A stretch of 64,000 nt of DNA, taken from positions 19,096,001 to 19,160,000 of the forward strand of contig NC_088807.1 of the NCBI RefSeq assembly GCF_011386835.1, read 5' to 3'. The notes below the pieces were generated by a model that saw only the letters and a list, made by a program, of their open reading frames with translations, was not told the origin of the DNA and did no database searches. Shown here one piece after another: positions 43,501-57,898 of this stretch. Position numbers and translations under genes: made by a program. This DNA is from Chrysemys picta bellii (taxonomy: Eukaryota). Numbering within the stretch: position 1 is the stretch's first letter; every line of letters starts with the position of its first letter.

Positions 43501-44574
43501 CCCTTCTCTCCATCCCACCCCCAGTGTGCATTTCGTCCCCCCGCCGCACTCCCCTAGCTGGCTCTGCTCCACACCCATTGGCTGGCACCGGGGCTGCTCC
43601 AGGCAAGGGAAGAACCTGACCCTGGAGCTGCTCGGAGCGAAGGACGGAGCCAGCCCAGAGCCGTTGGGGGCCCCTCGGGCCAGACTTCCCAGCCGGACTG
43701 TGCACACAGGGGGAGCCCCCACCCACTCTCTTACCTGCCCTAGGGCGGGAGGCAGTACCTGGCTGGCTCAGCGGCTGTGGGAGCAATGCAGGGATCCCCT
43801 GGGTCCAGGGCTGGGAACCGCCTACACAGCGAGTGAGAGAGGCTGGCTCAGAGCAGCCCATGGCAGGGGAACGAGAAACACCCCCCGCCATGGGACAGAG
43901 CCACCCACCCCTGGGCTGGATCTGGAGTCACTCCTGATTGCACTGGGGGCAGGGAAGGCCGGGTTCTGATCTCAGCTCCCCGGGATCAATCCGGAGTCAC
44001 CCCGATCTCAGCTCCCGCAGGGTCAATCCAGAGTCACCGCTGACTGCATTGGGGGCAGGGCCGGGTTCTGATCTCAGCTCCCTAGGGTCAATCTCACCCC
44101 CACATAAAGATCAAAACGAACGATGCTGCGGATCTCCGAGCCCGTCTCCCGATTGCTGGTTTTGCTAACAATTCCTGCCCTCCCGCACCCGTCACCTGCT
44201 GCCAGGCCTGGCCCAGAGCCAGGGACGCTGGGAGGAAAACAAGCCTCCTTAAGGAGCTTGCTCAGCTGCCAGCAGCCCTGTGATTAGACTAATAAGTGGG
44301 TGAGCGGCATCTCCCACCTGGATGCCTGGGTTCCACCAGCGCACCTGTTAGAGAGAAATCCGCGGCGCTGCCAATTGGCAGGGTTTGGGGTGTTTTGCAT
44401 AGAGCAGCTGGAGTTATGGGAAAACACAGGAGAAAGTCAGTTCCCGTTGAACCCGCCGGGACTTTTGTGGGGTCCCAAGGCCAAATTCTGGCCACAAAGA
44501 CACAAAAAGCTAAAGGTCATGAAAATGGCATGAATGGGTCAGAGAGAGTCACTGACACAGCTGTTTGGATAACT

Positions 44575-44880
44575 CCCAGCCCCCTGCTCTAACCACTCAC
44601 CCCCACTCCCCTCCCAGAGCCAGGGAGAGAACCCAGGAGTCCTGGCTCCCAGCCCCCCGCTCTAAACACCAGACCCCACTCCCCTCCCAGAGCCAGGGAG
44701 AGAACCCAGGAGTCCTGGCTCCCAGCCCCCCGCTCTAAACACCAGACCCCACTCCCCTCCCAGAGCCAGGGAGAGAACCCAGGAGTCCTGGCTCCCAGCC
44801 CCCCGCTCTAAACACCAGACCCCACTCCCCTCCCAGAGCCAGGGAGAGAACCCAGGAGTCCTGGCTCCCAGCCCCTCTCG
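44575..44880 (+). repeat. ~62-bp tandem repeat (GAGAACCCAGGAGTCCTG family)
   Basis: About 5 head-to-tail copies. Confidence 0.9.
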
Positions 44881-45424
44881 CCAGGTAATGACAGGATACT
44901 CACTGCACAGATGCTAATGACAAAGCCCCAGACACTGTGAGCAGCTCCTGCTTCCCTGACAGATGCCTGGCCTCTGCCCCACAGGGGCCTGAGCTCGCCA
45001 GGGCGTGAATCACCCAGGGCAGCGTTCCTGACAGCTGCAGGGGCAGAGCTGGGGAGGGGCTGGGAGCCAGGACTCCTGGGTTCCATCCCTGTGTCTCAAA
45101 GGGGAGGGGGGTCTAGTGGTTAGAGCAGGCGAGCAGGAGCTGGGAGCCAGGATGCCTGGGTTTTATCCCCGAGTGGTTGGATGGGGGGCTAGGAGCCAGG
45201 ACTCCTGGGTTCTCTCCTGGCTCTGGGAGGGGAGGGGAGTCTAGTGGTTAGAGCAGGGGGGGGCTGGGAGCCAGGACTCCTGGGATCTCTCCTGGCTCTG
45301 GGAGGGGAGGGGGGTCTAGTGGTTAGAGCAGGGGGAATGGGAGCCGGTTCTCTCCCCAACTCTGGCAGGGAAAAAGCCATGAGCCCTGCCCCCTTTCTCC
45401 CATCTCTCTCCCCCTCCCCAAGAT

Positions 45425-45611
45425 CCAGCTTCTGGCGGAAGCTTGGCTCCACTCCGTGCTTCACACGTGACCGCCGCCATCTTTGTCCCTGGCACATCCC
45501 CCGCCCCCGGCTGGGCCCGAATAGGGCAGACTCAGATCAGCCGCCATCTTCGATCCAGAGCGAGGCTCAGGGGCCAGAATGTTGCAGCCCAGCCCCCATC
45601 CAGCGCTGCAG
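45425..45611 (+). promoter_or_regulatory. CpG-island promoter and first exon of the transposase-derived gene
   Basis: GCGGAAG (ETS) 45435-45441, CACGTG 45464-45469, two CCGCCATCTT (YY1) at 45474 and 45541, donor CAG|GTACCA at 45611/45612. Confidence 0.6.
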
Positions 45612-48600
45612 GTACCAGCCCTGGCGGTGCCCCTCACTCCCGACCCGCAGCCCCCCCCGGTGCCCCTCACTCCCGACCTACAGCCCCCCCCCAGCCTGGC
45701 CGGTCCCCACCCCCGGGACCCGCAGCCCCCCCCCCGGTGCCCCTTACTCCCGACCTGCAGCCCTCCCCCCCCCGTATTCCCCACTCCCTACCTGCAGCCC
45801 CCCCCCCCGGCCCAGCCGGTCCCCGCCCGGTGCCCCTCACTCCCGATCTACAGCCCCCCCCCCCCAGCCCGGCCGGTCCCCACCCCTGGGACCCGCAGCC
45901 CCCCACTCCCGAACCACAGCCCGACCAGCCCCCCTGTTGCCCCTTACTTCTGACCCACAGCCCCCCGTGCTCCCCACTCCCGACCTGCAGCCTCCCCCAG
46001 TGCTCCTCACTCCCAACCTGCAACCCCCCCCGCCCGGCCGATCCCCCCCCGACCCGCAGCCCCCCCCGGCCCGGCCAGTCGCCCCTCGGTGCCCCTTACT
46101 CCCGACCCGCAGCCCCCCCCAGCCCGACTGCTGCCCCTCACTCCCGACCTGCAGTCGCCTCTCCGCGCTGGGCAAGAAAATGGACCTGGTAGCGGAACCC
46201 AGGAGTCCTGGGTACAAGGGGTCGGGTAGGACTGGCCTATTACCTGACTGTCCCGCCCCCTGAGCATCTCACAGTGTTTGTACCCTCCCGACACCCCCTG
46301 TGTGAGAGGCCGGGGCTCGTTATCCCCTCCTATAGAGAGGGAAACCGAGGCACGGAGACCCAGAGGACGCGCCTTTCCCAGGGCCTGTGCCAGGGCCTGC
46401 AATAGAAGTTGGGCTCCTCAGGCCCTGGACCAGCACCCACTAATGCCCACCCAGAGAGCCTGAAGAATTGGCTCCATGAGCTGGCAGCAGTAGTAGGTTG
46501 TTATCCTGTTCCAGCTGGGATGGCTGTGAAGGGAAGGGTGGGGGGAGGTAGGAGGAAATGTGGGATTGTGGGTAAATTCAGGGCTGAAGGAATGGGGAAG
46601 TGCAGCTCCCTCGAATATCAGGGTTGGAAGAGACCTCAGGATGTTCTAGTCCAACCCCCTGTTCAAAGCAGGACCAATCCCCAACTAAATCATCCCAGCC
46701 AGGGCTTTGTCAAGCTGGGCCTTAAAAACCGCTACGGATGGAGATTTCACCACCTCCCTAGGGAACCCATTCCAGTGCTTCGCCACCCTCCTATTAGGAA
46801 ATAGTGTTTCCTAATATCCAACCTGGACCTCCCCCACTGCAATGTCAGAGCATTGCTCCTTTTCTGTCATCTGCCCCCACTGAGAACAGCCGAGCTCCAT
46901 CCTCTTTGGAATCCCCCTTCAGGTAGTTGAAGGCTGCTATCAAATTCCCCCTCATTCTTCTCTTCTGTAGACTAAACAATCCCAGTTCCCTCAGCCTCTC
47001 CTCGTAAGTCATGTGCTCCAGCCCCCTGATCATTTTCGTTGCCCTCTGCCAGACTCTCTCCAATTTGTCCACATCCTTTCTGTAGTGGGGGGCCCAAAAC
47101 TGGATGCAATACTCCAGATGCGGCCTCACTAGTGACAAACAGAGGGGAATAATCACTTCCCTCGATCTGCTGGCAATGCCCCTACTTATACAGCCCAATA
47201 TGCCATTGGCCTTCTTCACAACAAGGGCACACTGCTGACTCATATCCAGCTTCTTGTCCACTGTAATCCCCAGGTCCTTTTCTGCAGAACAGCCGCTTAG
47301 CCATTCGGACCCCAGCCTGTAGCGGTGCCTGGGATTCTTCCATCCTAAGTGCAGGACTCTGCACTCGTCCTTGTTGAACCTTATCAGATTTCTTTTGGCC
47401 CAATCCTCCAATTTGTCTAGGTCCCTCTGTATCCGATCCCTACCCTCCTGCGTATCTACCACTCCTCCCAACTTAGTGTCATCCGCGAACTTGCTGATGG
47501 TGCAATTCATCCCATCCTCCAGATCATTAATAAAGATGTGAACAAAACCAGGACCGACCCTTGGGGCACTCCGCTTGATACCGGCTGCCAACTAGACATG
47601 GAGCCGTTGATCACTACCCGTTGAGCCCGACGATCTAGCCAGCTTTCTATCCACCTTATAGTCCATTCATCCAGCCCATACTTCTTTAACTTGCTGGCAA
47701 GAATACTGTGGGAGACCGTATCAAAAGCTTTGTTAAAGTCAAGATATATCACGTCCACTGCTTTCCCCATATCCACAGAGCCAGTTATCTCGTCATAGAA
47801 GGCAATCAGGGCATGACTTGCCCTTAGTGAATCTATCCCCCACCGCCCCCAATTTATCCATCCCCGCCCAAGGAGTATCATGAACCCACCCACGTTGTTC
47901 CCCGGGGTTCTTTCAACCCAAAGCTCTTGGTAATTTTTACTCAGTGCGAGGTGGTGTCAAGAAATAAATCAGGGGAGACACGGCCATCCGACCGATAGAT
48001 GGCTGGCACACACAGGACAACACTTAAACTTAAAGCTAAACGTTACTTAATCTCAAGCACTCACACACGTCCGCAACAGGTTAGTAAAACACCCCCAACC
48101 CTTGATAATTACCAAAGCTGAGTGTCGCTCTCGAATGGCACAACGGCAGGCTTCGTCAGCCAAATCTTCCGTCTGCCAGTGGGGACCCCTGAGATGCGTC
48201 CCGAGGGAGCGTCCCTGAAGAAAGCCTCCCGAACAGTCCAACTAACGCAAACTTCCTCCCCTTATTTATACATTAGCACTAGGATGACATGTCACTTAAA
48301 GAAAACTTGCTAGGCAAGTGATTTTTAAGAGTCAATCAAGAGGTTTCCTTCTGAGCATTAATTTAACCAGATGTGGGGGTTTTTAGAGGGCACATGCCTT
48401 CATGCCCTGATAGACAGATTCCTGTTTTTCTAAAATACAAGTCTCAGCAATTTCAACGTTCTTAGCAGGAAGGGCGGAGGGTGAAGCCGCCCTTTCCATG
48501 GTACCCAAAACCCCCTCCCCTCCTGCCTTGGTTAAGCTAAGCCTGCTGACTTGGCTACTGTTAGCAATAAGCCATAGTGATTCGGGCACTTTACTGGTTT

Positions 48601-50905
48601 GCCAAGATCTCCCCGAACGACGTCTCCGGCGCCCACTATGGGCCGGAGCAGGAAGTGCAGAACGAGGCGCCTGGCAGAGCTCGGAGAGGCGCCCGGAGGA
48701 ACCTGCTGGAGCCCCAAAGAAGGAGAATCCGCCCGGGCTGCCGGCTGCCAGGAGAGACGTCTGAGGACAAAGGTACCGTCCTGCAGAGGGGCAGGACTTT
48801 TGGGTTCTCCCCCTGGCTCAGGGAGGGGAGTGGGGTCTAGTGGTTAGAGCAGGGGGAGGAGGCGCTGGGAGCCAGGACTCCTGGGTTCTCTCCCCCAGTG
48901 ACCCCGTGCCCTGTCCCTGCAGCGGAAGCCCCGTCTGGCATCGGGGACCTGGTTCTGGCAGCTGAACTGATGGAGATGGCCGGGGTGTCCCCCTGCTATG
49001 CCCAGCACCGGGGCGGGACCCAGCCGGCCGTGCAGCACGACCATGGGGCCTACGGCGTCCCCCAGGAGCCGGCTGCGCTGCACCGCATGGTGCGGGAGCT
49101 GCAGGAGACGGTGCATCGGCAGAACCAGCTGCTGCAGAGCTCGCAGGAGGCCCTGGCCGCCAGCCAGGAGCGCTGCCAGGAGCTGCAGGTGAGGGGCGAG
49201 GCACTAGGGGGCGCAGTGCTGCAAGGCGAGGGCATCATTCCCATACCCCACCCCAGAGTCAGCCGCATCCCAGCGCCGGGCAAGGGATCCCCGGATCCCC
49301 AGCACCCCCCCCCCAGATGGGCAGGGCGAGGGGTCCCCGAATCCCCAGCCCCTGCGCCCCACCCCAGATGGGCTGGGCGAGGGGTCCCTGGATACCCAGC
49401 CCCTGCGCCCCACTCCAGATGGGCTGGGCGAGGGGGCCCCGGATCCCCAGCCCCTGCGCCCCACTCCAGATGGGCTGGGCGAGGGGGCCCCGGATCCCCA
49501 GCCCCTGCGCCCCACCCCAGATGGGCTGGGCGAGGGGCCCCCGGATCCCCAGCCGCGTCTCTGGCTCTGCGTGCCGTAGGAGAGGTCGGAGAGCGAGTGC
49601 TGGGCGCTGGCGTCGGAGCTGGGCCAGCGGATCGCGGCGCTGGAGGCGGAGAACCGGAACCTGCGGTGCGAGCGGGACCAGCTGGAGAGCCAGACGCAGG
49701 GGCTGCGGGAGGAGCTGGAGCGGAGCCGCAGCACGGTGCTGCACATCAGCCAGAAGCTGAAGGAGCAGGGGGGCCGGGCCGGGCCGGGCCGGTTCTGCCT
49801 GGCCAGCGTCCGGGACGACGGCAAGTGGCTGCGGTTCTACACCGGCTTCGGCAGCGCCCAGCGCCTGGCCGCGTTCCTGGCCTTCCTGACGGAGGGGGAG
49901 CCGCAGCGGGGGGCCGAGCCGGGCCCCCCCAGCGCCCTGGGCCCCGAGGACCAGCTCTTCCTGGTGCTGGTGCGGCTGCGGCTGGGGCTGCTCCTGCAGG
50001 ATCTGGCCTTTCGCTTCCACCTTTCCGAGGCCACCGTCTCCCGCTACTGGCTCGGCTGGACCCAGCTCATGGAGACCCGGCTGGCCCAGGTGAGCCCCCA
50101 CCCTGGGGCCGGCGCCCCCTAGGGGGACAGGCCCCGGGCCCCATTCCCCACCCCCTGAGCCAGCCAGTCCCTGTCCTGGGGCCGGATGGGGCTGGCGCCC
50201 CCTAGAGGGGAGCAGGGGAGAATCTGTGTGCAGAACAGATTGGAGGGACTGGTCCACCCCTCACATGGGGAGGGGGCATTGCTTGGAGGGGTGCCCCCCC
50301 CAGGGGCAGGGGTTGCCTGGAGGGACTGGTCAGCCCCCCCATATGGGGATCACATGGGAAGGGGGTGTGACCTGGAGGGACAGTCCCCCACCTGGGAAGG
50401 GGGAGTGGCCTGGAGCCCCCCCACCTCCCAGCAGGGCCTGACTCTCCCGCCCCCTCTCCCGCAGGTGCCGGTGCGGTGCAGCCCGCGCTACGTGGAGCGG
50501 TTCGAGCCGCAGCGGGCGGCGCGGGTTGGGGGCGTCCCGCTGGTGGTGCTGGACTGCGCCCAGCTCTGCTTCGAGGGCCGGGGCCGGCAGCTCTACGCCC
50601 TGCAGGGCTGCGCCCTGGCCGCCCCCAGCGGCTTCCTGGCCTTCTGCTGCAGCGCCGCCTTGCGGGGCAGGGAAGGGGGGCCGGGGCTGCCCCCCTTCCT
50701 GCGGGACGGCCCCGTGGCCCTCAGCGCCCAGCAGGGGGAGGCCAGCCGGCAGGTGCTCAGCCTGGCCAGCCTGGCCGACAAGGCCCTGCGCTTCCGCTTC
50801 CTGCGGGGGGTCCAGCCCCCTGCCATGGAGGGCCAGGTGGGGCGGGCCTGGGCCATCTGCTGCTACCTGGCCTGCCTGCTGCATGAGCCCATGGGGCTGG
50901 CCTAG
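45579..50905 (+). CDS. Uncharacterised transposase-derived protein (coiled coil + HTH_Tnp_4 + degenerate DDE_Tnp_4), ~463-471 aa; exons 45579-45611 (or 46180-46188), 48607-48772, 48923-49188, 49580-50089, 50465-50905
   Basis: GT-AG introns join into one stop-free frame (phases 0,1,0,0); motifs FCLASVRDD...[43 protein letters not shown]...E, P.G...F, LPPFL. The last three exons are solid; the start exon is uncertain. Confidence 0.78.
46612..47815 (-). mobile_element. 5'-truncated CR1 LINE (RT region plus 3' end) in the intron of the transposase-derived gene
   Basis: [19 protein letters not shown]...SGVPQGSVL / FINDLEDG...[11 protein letters not shown]...RPHLEYC.QFWAP; one frameshift near 47590. 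Confidence 0.93.
47955..48604 (-). mobile_element. Probable solo LTR (~650 bp)
   Basis: Ends TGTCAA...TTGCCA; minus-strand TATAAATA ~48265; no TSD found. Confidence 0.4.
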
Positions 50906-51704
50906 GCAGGGGGGTCTGCCTCTGCCCCCAGGGGGAGGTGGGCCTTGGGGATTCCCCGCCTCCCCCCATAGCTGGCAGGTGTGGGGCTGGTATAGGGGCC
51001 CTGGATTCCCCCCTGCCAGTGACTGGGGGGAAGGGAGATCTGGGGGTCATCCAAGGGGGCTCACTGGGGGTCCTGCTCTCAGCTGTAGCTGATCTATGTG
51101 GCAGCCTGGATAGGGCATTTGGCCCCGCAATGCCCCCTCTTGGGGGGGTCCACACTGGGAGGGGGCTATGGGTGGGGGAGGGGCCGAGCCCTCCCCCTGA
51201 TTCCAGCCCACGAAGGCAGGAGGATGGGATAGTATCGGGGCGCTGGAGGCAGCTGGATCCCTCTCATTCCCCCTTCCACACAGGGGCGGGTAAAGCGAGG
51301 CACAGAAAGACCATGCTCAGCCCAGGGTGGAGGCAGGGATAGAACCCAGGAGTCCTGACTCCCAGGACCCCACCCCCCCCTTGCTCTAACCACTAGTCCA
51401 GATTCCCCTCCTAGAGTCAGGGAGAGAAATGGTGTCAAGTGGTTAGAGCACACTGGGGCTGGGAGCCAGGACTCCCGGGTTCTGTCCTCAGCTTTGCTGC
51501 TTCTGTTTCCCACTTTTTCTCCCCCTCCTGCCCAGCTGGTCCTGTCCCTGGGCTCAAGCCATTTGGGGGTGCCTGGAGAGGGGAGGCAATTCCCCACCTT
51601 TGCCAAATGGGGGGGGGGCTGCAGGGCCACTGGCCCCAACCCTGCTGCTCTATGTCTGGGTGGGTTCGTGGATTATTTGTAACCTGTCCCTGCTTTTGGT
51701 TGGA

Positions 51705-51710
51705 AATAAA
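51705..51710 (+). terminator. Putative poly(A) signal of the transposase-derived gene
   Basis: AATAAA about 800 nt after the TAG at 50903-50905, followed by T-rich sequence. Confidence 0.55.
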
Positions 51711-52595
51711 CCATTTGTTCCTGGGAACGGCGGTGAGGAGACATCCGTGAGCAGGGCCCCCCCCTCCAATAAGCCACCTGTATTGCAACCTATGCCCTCC
51801 CTGGGGGGACAGCCCTGCCCCACAGCCATGGGGAGCAGGAGAAAGCCCTGGGCCCCTCCCTTGAGAGAGCGGGATTGTGGGTTCTCTCTCTCCCAGGCTC
51901 TGGGAGGGGAGTGGGGTCTAGTGGTTAGAGCATGTCCTGGCCCCAGCTCTCCCCAGGGGGAAGTTGGCTGGAGGGACAGGGCACTGGCCACTTGCAGCAT
52001 AAGTGAGGCACCTGCTGGGCTCTTCTCTGCCCCACTGACTCCAGCAGAGCCCTGGGGCCAAACAGATGGGGGGGAGGGGGGGTGTGAGAGAGAGCACACA
52101 CGCGCGACACAGCCCACAGCCCCCCGGGAGGAGCCTGAGCCCCATTGGAAAGGCAGCTGCCCCCCAAACCTAGCCCTGCCCCCCTCACAGCTGTTGTCTG
52201 TAGAAGAGGGACAGGGGCAAATACAGACACTATTGCAACCTGGGGCGGCCCAGGGGCTACTTATCCAGGGACCCCTCCCCTGGTGCTGAGACGCAGCCCC
52301 AAGGCAGTGGAGCTGGTTATCCAGGGATTCCTCATCTGCTGAGATGGGGCAGGGCCCAGGGGCTGGGTATATGGGGACCCCTCCCCTGGCGCTGAGACAT
52401 GGCCCCTCTGGGGCAAGGGGGGGCTGGGTATATGGGGGTCCCCCCGGGACATGGCCCCTCTGGAATGGGGTGTGGGGGCTGGGTGTAACGGGGACCCCTC
52501 GCCCTGCACTGGGACATGGCCCCTGTGGGTTAGTGGGGGGAAGGGCACTGCCCCGCAAGCAAACACAGCAGACGCCAGCCCACGGTTCTGACCCA

Positions 52596-52601
52596 TTTAT
52601 T
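52596..52601 (-). terminator. RPL18 poly(A) signal
   Basis: TTTATT on + strand, 28 nt beyond the stop codon. Confidence 0.85.
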
Positions 52602-52629
52602 GGACACAGGCAGGTGCGGGCCGGCGCCC

Positions 52630-57898
<5,269 letters not shown>

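Follow-up and report, generated by a model that had tools for sequence, protein, structure and literature searches.

Several vertebrate regulators, among them RAG1, the THAP proteins and HARBI1/NAIF1, are domesticated transposases. In the transposases of the PIF/Harbinger/ISL2EU group, an HTH_Tnp_4 domain normally lies directly N-terminal of the DDE_Tnp_4 catalytic domain. PIF/Harbinger, ISL2EU and Spy together make up the PHIS superfamily. HARBI1 derives from Harbinger proper, has a full DDE_Tnp_4 domain with the Asp-Asp-Glu (D-D-E) catalytic triad but neither a THAP domain nor a coiled coil, and is present in mammals. ISL2EU elements have a layout of two open reading frames (ORFs), one for the transposase and the other for a YqaJ protein (PMC4482050, PMC9179366). 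Among the vertebrate genes derived from Harbinger elements, HARBI1 originates from the transposase, and NAIF1 and MSANTD1-4 from the Myb-like gene; the list of Harbinger-superfamily domestications given in PMC9392472 contains none from the ISL2EU branch. The Arabidopsis protein ALP1 is described, in passages of PMC4671723 and PMC7282668, as an accessory member of Polycomb repressive complex 2. The gene reported here, LOC112060730 of the turtle Chrysemys picta bellii, is located in a stretch of 64,000 nucleotides (contig NC_088807.1, positions 19,096,001 to 19,160,000; hereafter the window, whose own numbering is used below), and all its features lie on the plus strand. It is very probably a single-copy host gene domesticated from an ISL2EU-type transposase, the last exon of which would encode a non-catalytic remnant of the DDE domain, serving as a structural or interaction module.

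The order of the domains in the family of this gene, namely THAP (in fish orthologues), a coiled-coil-like region, HTH_Tnp_4 and a C-terminal homologue of DDE_Tnp_4, is that of ISL2EU transposases, and the closest intact relatives share this architecture, the one examined also having a YqaJ ORF. In contrast to such elements, the turtle gene is present in one copy in the window, at a fixed syntenic position, has no YqaJ neighbour (across the loci compared, a sulfotransferase gene and RPL18 are annotated beside it, and no YqaJ gene is among the neighbours), and lacks the block with the second catalytic Asp as well as the full fold. HTH_Tnp_4 is present in the family, THAP occurs in fish orthologues and is absent from the window and from the sauropsid and frog loci, and the DDE domain is degenerate. 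The gene clearly descends from an ISL2EU element but is not one. With HARBI1 it has in common that both are ancient transposase-derived host genes of jawed vertebrates from the same superfamily; however, when set against the description of HARBI1, the turtle family fails to match Pfam DDE_Tnp_4, has an incomplete triad, and yielded no mammalian, bird or crocodilian member in three protein searches, so the gene is not HARBI1. The resemblance to ALP1/HDP1 of Arabidopsis is one of kind and not of membership: there, too, a transposase of the PIF/Harbinger superfamily was domesticated, lost its catalytic residues and was kept as a host protein, but the animal gene represents an independent domestication from the ISL2EU branch, in which a whole segment was deleted and not only point substitutions were accumulated. 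The DPLG genes of Drosophila, described in parts of PMC9710019, likewise illustrate the recurrent domestication of PIF-like transposases, often together with a partner protein, although they belong to another lineage and source element, and no co-domesticated partner was identified for the turtle family.

The last coding exon (50465-50905, with its acceptor AG at 50463-50464) is an open frame of 146 codons that continues exon 4 in phase 0 and ends with TAG at 50903-50905. Its translation (146 amino acids), a degenerate and compacted domain derived from DDE_Tnp_4, is 100% identical to the C-terminus of LOC112060730 (database protein P0134), a protein of 471 amino acids annotated as "uncharacterized protein", which maps to the window as five coding exons; the exons of the window were matched singly, and the database protein was used as the full-length reference. 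No Pfam family matched the last exon even at E 10, DDE_Tnp_4 included, and the whale shark orthologue scored 20.3 bits against Pfam DDE_Tnp_4 (PF13359), for which the cut-off is 24.8. A hidden Markov model (HMM) built from intact domains matched the exon at E 7e-8, and hhalign aligned the family with 16 intact transposase domains over 166 columns (probability 99.6%, E 4.5e-24). An exhaustive search of 1.84 billion representative proteins with the family profile returned 62 matches at E <= 1e-3, of which the top 30 or so constitute the orthologue family, with HTH_Tnp_4 present, THAP sometimes and Pfam DDE_Tnp_4 never, and the others (E 1e-14 to 1e-3) combine THAP, HTH_Tnp_4 and an intact DDE_Tnp_4 domain to which Pfam gives strong scores. 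Both the hhalign result and the retrieval of intact transposases bear out the DDE-type identity proposed in an earlier sequence-only reading of the exon, and support the descent of the domain from a PIF/Harbinger/ISL2EU-type DDE domain as opposed to a chance resemblance. The closest intact relatives found, of which the named ones are from ticks, are 18-28% identical in the domain. One intact-relative locus was inspected for a YqaJ neighbour, that of the tick Ornithodoros turicata, where the THAP-HTH-DDE gene (P0037) adjoins an ORF of 501 amino acids with a YqaJ domain. This ORF is unannotated, and with it the locus (L009 11170-12675 and 14494-18078, minus strand) makes up a complete ISL2EU-type element; a reverse-transcriptase ORF of an unrelated retroelement lies beyond it.

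The catalytic motifs were traced in two ways, by profile-profile alignment with the 16 intact relatives and by MAFFT, and were followed through 74 family rows from sharks, rays, bichir, gar, teleosts, coelacanth, lungfish, frogs, squamates and turtles. By both methods the first catalytic Asp, which belongs to the motif I-I/L-D-C-T-E (IIDCTE) of intact transposases, is kept as D30 of VVLDCAQ (codon 50552-50554). The Glu of HVER aligns, by hhalign column mapping, to D105 of SLADK (codon 50777-50779), and a deletion of four residues follows directly after D105-K106. Between these two positions the place of alpha1, of beta4 with the second Asp (MADRGF) and of alpha2 is occupied by a short linker, about residues 62-74 (50648-50686). 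The core gap, about 36 hhalign columns between residues 71 and 72 (about 50677/50678), spans the helix with GRxSDK, the strand that ends in MADRGF and the next helix, and the MAFFT column of the second Asp lands between the same two residues. The second-Asp motif AD[RK]GF is absent from the whole protein in 74 of the 74 family rows, while among intact relatives this motif and the Glu are each found in 28 of 29. The C-terminal helix with its tail (residues 119-146, 50819-50902) is the most conserved part of the domain: ICCYLACL aligns to iCc.L.NF of the motif iCc.L.NF..PLL of intact transposases, and the columns W129, C133, Y134, L135, C137 and P142-L145 are invariant across gnathostomes.

Most of what the sequence-only reading had said of these motifs agrees with the alignments: the retention of the first acidic residue, the correspondence of the Glu of RIHVER to ASLADK, the preservation of the terminal CxxLxN helix as CCYLACL, and the dead and compacted state of the domain as a whole. 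Its statement that both the YSxYK segment and the second Asp had been lost between APSGFLAFC and LPPFL is right for the second-Asp block; SxYK, however, lies before the APSGF strand, and is missing in the window because of a separate deletion of 12 residues that is found in turtles only. The junction of this deletion, G40/R41 (50582-50587, about 50584/50585), was placed by the hhalign gap. It takes out the loop bearing S-x-Y of the SxYK motif, which is retained in squamates, frogs and fishes, with P-Y-R there in the non-turtle members.

Sauropsids show no variation at the two acidic positions that remain, and in most lineages these are conservative. At position 1, the 74 rows have D in 58, E in 11, H in two and R in one; at position 3, D is found in 69, G in three, N in one and E in one, the last being a low-quality model. 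Astyanax has His at position 1, and Alosa has Arg at position 1 and Asn at position 3. The Gly at the former Glu position (SVIGK) belongs to the frog sequences P0165, P0172 and P0174, two of them hylid (Dendropsophus, Hyla). A hidden exon that might supply the missing motif was considered and rejected. In a six-frame HMM search of positions 44000-53000 of the window, only the last exon was matched (HMM 1-38 and 124-195) and nothing for 80-123, and the domain forms one contiguous tblastn match in the loci of Gopherus, Pelodiscus, Lacerta, Eublepharis and Gastrophryne; hence no extra exon supplies the second-Asp motif, either in the window or, as had been raised as the case that would overturn the earlier reading, in those five orthologous loci. 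The core deletion itself, the conservation of which in orthologues had been proposed as a check, is common to all 74 family proteins. These alignments support the conclusion that a canonical D-D-E triad would be impossible in the last-exon domain.

The predicted structure is consistent with the loss of a segment. The AlphaFold2 model of the window exon, made from an alignment of 55 sequences, has a mean predicted local distance difference test score (pLDDT) of 85.2 and a predicted template modelling score of 0.82. It comprises strands at residues 17-21, 24-37 (containing D30), 43-52 and 57-62, followed by a poorly ordered linker, short helices around D105 and a long C-terminal helix at 119-139; the C-terminal block is predicted with a pLDDT of about 92-94, and the linker residues (approximately 62-74) have the lowest values of the model except for the last residues. 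In the model the beta1-beta3 meander is still present, as are the C-terminal helices, and alpha1, beta4, alpha2 and beta5 are missing. An intact relative (P0038:260-456), modelled as the control with a pLDDT of 92, shows the order beta1, beta2, beta3, alpha1, beta4, alpha2, beta5, a long Glu-bearing helix and a C-terminal helix. Both models were compared (VIA Z) with the same 48,161 Protein Data Bank (PDB) representatives. The control matched foamy virus integrase (Z 8.8), Tn5 (8.6), human immunodeficiency virus (HIV) integrase (8.5), TnsB (7.8), Mu (7.3), ISCth4 (6.8), piggyBac (6.4), Mos1 (6.2) and Argonautes, whereas the window model had no match at Z 5 or above among these representatives, its best one being the ISCth4 transposase (Z 3.8, root-mean-square deviation 5.4 A, 106 residues). 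Foldseek found nothing below E 0.26 for the window model in the PDB, and the family profile had no match among PDB sequences at E 10. The RNase H-like fold, a five-stranded mixed sheet with flanking helices, is thus not reproduced by the predicted model, and the last-exon domain appears to be a truncated relic of that fold and not an intact scaffold. The earlier proposal of a nuclease-dead RNase H-like scaffold therefore holds as regards the dead triad but is overstated as regards the scaffold, considering the best Z of 3.8 against 8.8 for the control.

The locus has the properties of a host gene. The exons of RPL18 (eL18) occupy the minus strand at approximately 52630-56409 of the window, so that the gene and RPL18 are arranged tail-to-tail, and the same arrangement is found in Gopherus, Pelodiscus, Lacerta, Eublepharis, a frog (Nanorana) and a manta ray (Mobula); gar has other neighbours, and there the gene is not beside RPL18. 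Upstream of the gene, the loci of Gopherus, Pelodiscus and Nanorana have a sulfotransferase gene (the window was not looked at for this gene), and in Gopherus a sphingosine-kinase-like gene lies beyond RPL18. The exon boundaries coincide in lizard and turtle. In pairs with unsaturated dS, Nei-Gojobori ratios of nonsynonymous to synonymous divergence (dN/dS) fall at 0.15-0.38 in the last exon and at 0.17-0.44 in the exon of the HTH. Pelodiscus sinensis has the gene and RPL18 in a tandem duplicate (L004 2717-4901 and 10001-11448) with a dS of about 0.015 between the copies, which results either from a segmental duplication of recent date or from one introduced in the assembly.

The family was delimited by three protein searches, two of them word searches that together cover proteins of approximately 131-1137 residues, and the third the profile search mentioned above, which had no length limit. 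The first word search with the last exon returned "uncharacterized" proteins of turtles, squamates and one frog; the second added many turtles, about 20 squamates, about 25 frogs (including both Xenopus species), lungfish, sturgeons, bowfin, herring and a shark. None of the three yielded a bird, crocodilian or mammalian member, and since predicted proteomes were searched this is not proof of gene loss. One protein of Acipenser sinensis (P0169, 877 amino acids, UNVERIFIED_CONTAM) matches the C-terminal domain of the family and has precomputed Pfam hits to p53-family and fibronectin domains; the model looks like a mis-merged gene prediction. In a quick maximum-likelihood tree, with the Shimodaira-Hasegawa-like approximate likelihood ratio test (SH-aLRT) as the only support measure and a midpoint root, the family is separated from the intact proteins by one branch with an SH-aLRT value of 100. 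Members from turtles, squamates, frogs and ray-finned fishes form one group per lineage and the groups largely follow vertebrate taxonomy, except that the ray is not grouped with the sharks. THAP domains are present in the orthologues of ray, gar (two copies), Astyanax, herring, bowfin and coelacanth, and were detectable neither in the proteins of frogs, squamates and turtles nor in the sequence flanking the loci; when the THAP regions of coelacanth, gar, ray and Astyanax were used as queries against the window and the 10 kb flanking sauropsid loci, no credible THAP exon came up. This distribution suggests that THAP was lost in the tetrapod stem.

Taken together, synteny, exon structure, dN/dS and the tree place the domestication earlier than the separation of cartilaginous from bony vertebrates, and the same results lead to the rejection of a decaying transposon. 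It would be a fossil or pseudogene with a chance open frame, or else an artefact of annotation or assembly, and might be suspected from the failure of Pfam to recognise the domain, from the GC-rich and repeat-rich region around the gene, and from several sea-turtle database models of the gene that are frameshifted. This explanation is largely refuted and hardly credible, given that the frame is intact, lizard and turtle share one exon-intron structure, the neighbours are the same from ray to turtle, dN/dS is well below 1, the deletion is common to the 74 family members, and the missing piece occurs in no frame nearby. Slightly less remote, but still very improbable, is that the protein is an active nuclease or transposase, in which D30 and D105 are joined by a third carboxylate, provided either by the linker or by a partner subunit in trans. 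The invariance of D30 and D105 in tetrapods, with the exception of the three frog sequences, and the acidic residues in the linkers of fishes and frogs are what such an enzyme would show; but the second-Asp strand and its flanking helices are gone from every family member, the residues at positions 1 and 3 include the His of Astyanax, the Arg and Asn of Alosa and the Gly of the frogs, the sauropsid linker at the deletion site is only about 10 residues long and not conserved, and the predicted model, unlike that of the intact control, bears no resemblance to RNase H-like enzymes.

An unlikely, though more serious, candidate is a transposase-derived repressor, that is, a dead copy which still binds DNA and dimerises, and thereby competes with or poisons active ISL2EU transposases in a dominant-negative form of genome defence, as opposed to the regulation of host genes. 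For P elements and others it is established that truncated transposases can act as repressors, and the HTH, the coiled-coil-like region and the THAP domain of fishes have been kept, by which such a protein could bind transposon ends or form heterodimers. However, one locus has been under selection since before the split of sharks and bony vertebrates, which by far outlasts the normal activity of a single transposon family, the closest intact relatives found, those from ticks among them, are only 18-28% identical in the domain, and the loss of THAP in tetrapods would be odd if recognition of ISL2EU ends through THAP were the function. Since the gene has stayed intact and syntenic under purifying selection, a non-catalytic host role is the natural reading, and to this extent the earlier suggestion of such a role is upheld; the specific roles named there, chromatin adaptor or transposase inhibitor, are candidates.

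The domestication of an ISL2EU-type transposase into a non-catalytic host protein may then be pictured as follows. A transposase with the order THAP / coiled coil / HTH_Tnp_4 / DDE_Tnp_4 would have been domesticated before the cartilaginous/bony vertebrate split. In the ancestor of the family alpha1, beta4 with the second Asp, and alpha2 would have been lost and the catalytic Glu replaced by Asp, with retention of the beta1-beta2-beta3 sheet and the C-terminal helices; turtles would later have shed the further loop of 12 residues. Because the second-Asp segment is lost and Glu is changed to Asp, the remnant domain would be unable to hold the pair of metal ions of a DDE active site, and is probably neither a nuclease nor a transposase. 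It is under purifying selection, strongest at the extreme C-terminus, and is most likely a folded structural or protein-interaction module that ends a dimeric DNA-binding protein, in which dimerisation would occur via the coiled coil and DNA binding via HTH_Tnp_4, plus THAP in fishes. The protein as a whole may act as a transposase-derived DNA-binding regulator or adaptor. A fuller scenario, which is proposed tentatively and has somewhat less than an even chance of being right in all its parts, is that this is the first host gene known from ISL2EU, formed before the crown gnathostomes and since then lost from mammals, birds and crocodilians; that the deletion of alpha1-beta4-alpha2 gave rise to a new compact fold; and that the invariant C-terminal peptide docks a conserved partner, so that the dimeric adaptor recruits a chromatin or transcription complex.

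Several points weigh against this interpretation or parts of it. The AlphaFold models rest on alignments of 43-55 sequences and are not solved structures. D30 and D105 may be used in binding a metal or another ligand. In fishes and frogs the deletion site holds an acidic low-complexity linker with Asp and Glu, although these residues have no conserved context. The role of a DNA-binding adaptor is suggested by domain content and by other domesticated transposases, and transcription and splicing of the gene in Chrysemys are presumed from identity to the NCBI model LOC112060730.

In the literature consulted no description was found of an ISL2EU-derived vertebrate gene or of the locus identifiers of this gene, and the main text of the preprint by Cosby et al. 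(2021) does not mention Harbinger, PIF or ISL2EU. The family has the appearance of an old, undescribed gene domesticated from a transposon, and would add to such genes an ancient member that is lacking in model mammals and birds; probably because these animals are without it, its members have only "uncharacterized LOC" names. The presence of members in Xenopus, herring, Astyanax and gar makes the family open to experimental study; the member of Xenopus tropicalis is LOC101732849. It also offers a natural example of a DDE/RNase H-like core that has lost a whole segment and has yet been maintained by selection for several hundred million years, and so bears on the question of which parts of the transposase fold are reused non-catalytically.

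The remaining exons of the gene precede the last one on the same strand. Coding exon 1 (45579-45611), found as an exact match to LOC112060730 in the six-frame translation, begins with ATG and has 11 codons and a donor GT at 45612. Coding exon 2 (48607-48772; 55 codons plus 1 nt) encodes a poorly conserved N-terminal region and was located by tblastn of LOC112060730, with the splice sites assigned by reading. Coding exon 3 (48923-49188, donor GT at 49189), found by tblastn of LOC112060730 and of the frog, gecko and gar orthologues, encodes conserved motifs, including HDHGAY, and the beginning of the coiled-coil-like region. Coding exon 4 (49580-50089), 100% identical to LOC112060730 and ending in phase 0, encodes the rest of this region, a LRFYTGF motif and HTH_Tnp_4 (about 49934-50086), the latter matched by Pfam at E 5.9e-17; the coiled-coil-like middle region gives weak Pfam matches to coiled-coil families. 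A CCDC106-like or zinc-finger identity of the gene was also considered and rejected, as Pfam shows HTH_Tnp_4 only. An AATAAA at 51705-51710 (plus strand), found by pattern search, is the likely polyadenylation signal.

Most of intron 3 (49189-49579) is occupied by a tandem repeat with a 51-bp unit (49306-49554, no strand assigned), for which Tandem Repeats Finder reports 4.9 copies with 94% matches. The repeat is open in one frame, and in the NCBI isoforms of Gopherus evgoodei (650-660 amino acids) the equivalent repeat is read as coding, which is probably intron retention or a model artefact. The window contains two runs of N, at 184-490 and 536-680, 452 bases in all. Stretches resembling the head of a tRNA-derived short interspersed nuclear element, with motifs such as ...tggttagagc...gggagccaggactcc.gggttc..., are scattered around the exons of the gene in both orientations (48833-48897, 51338-51402 and 51431-51490).

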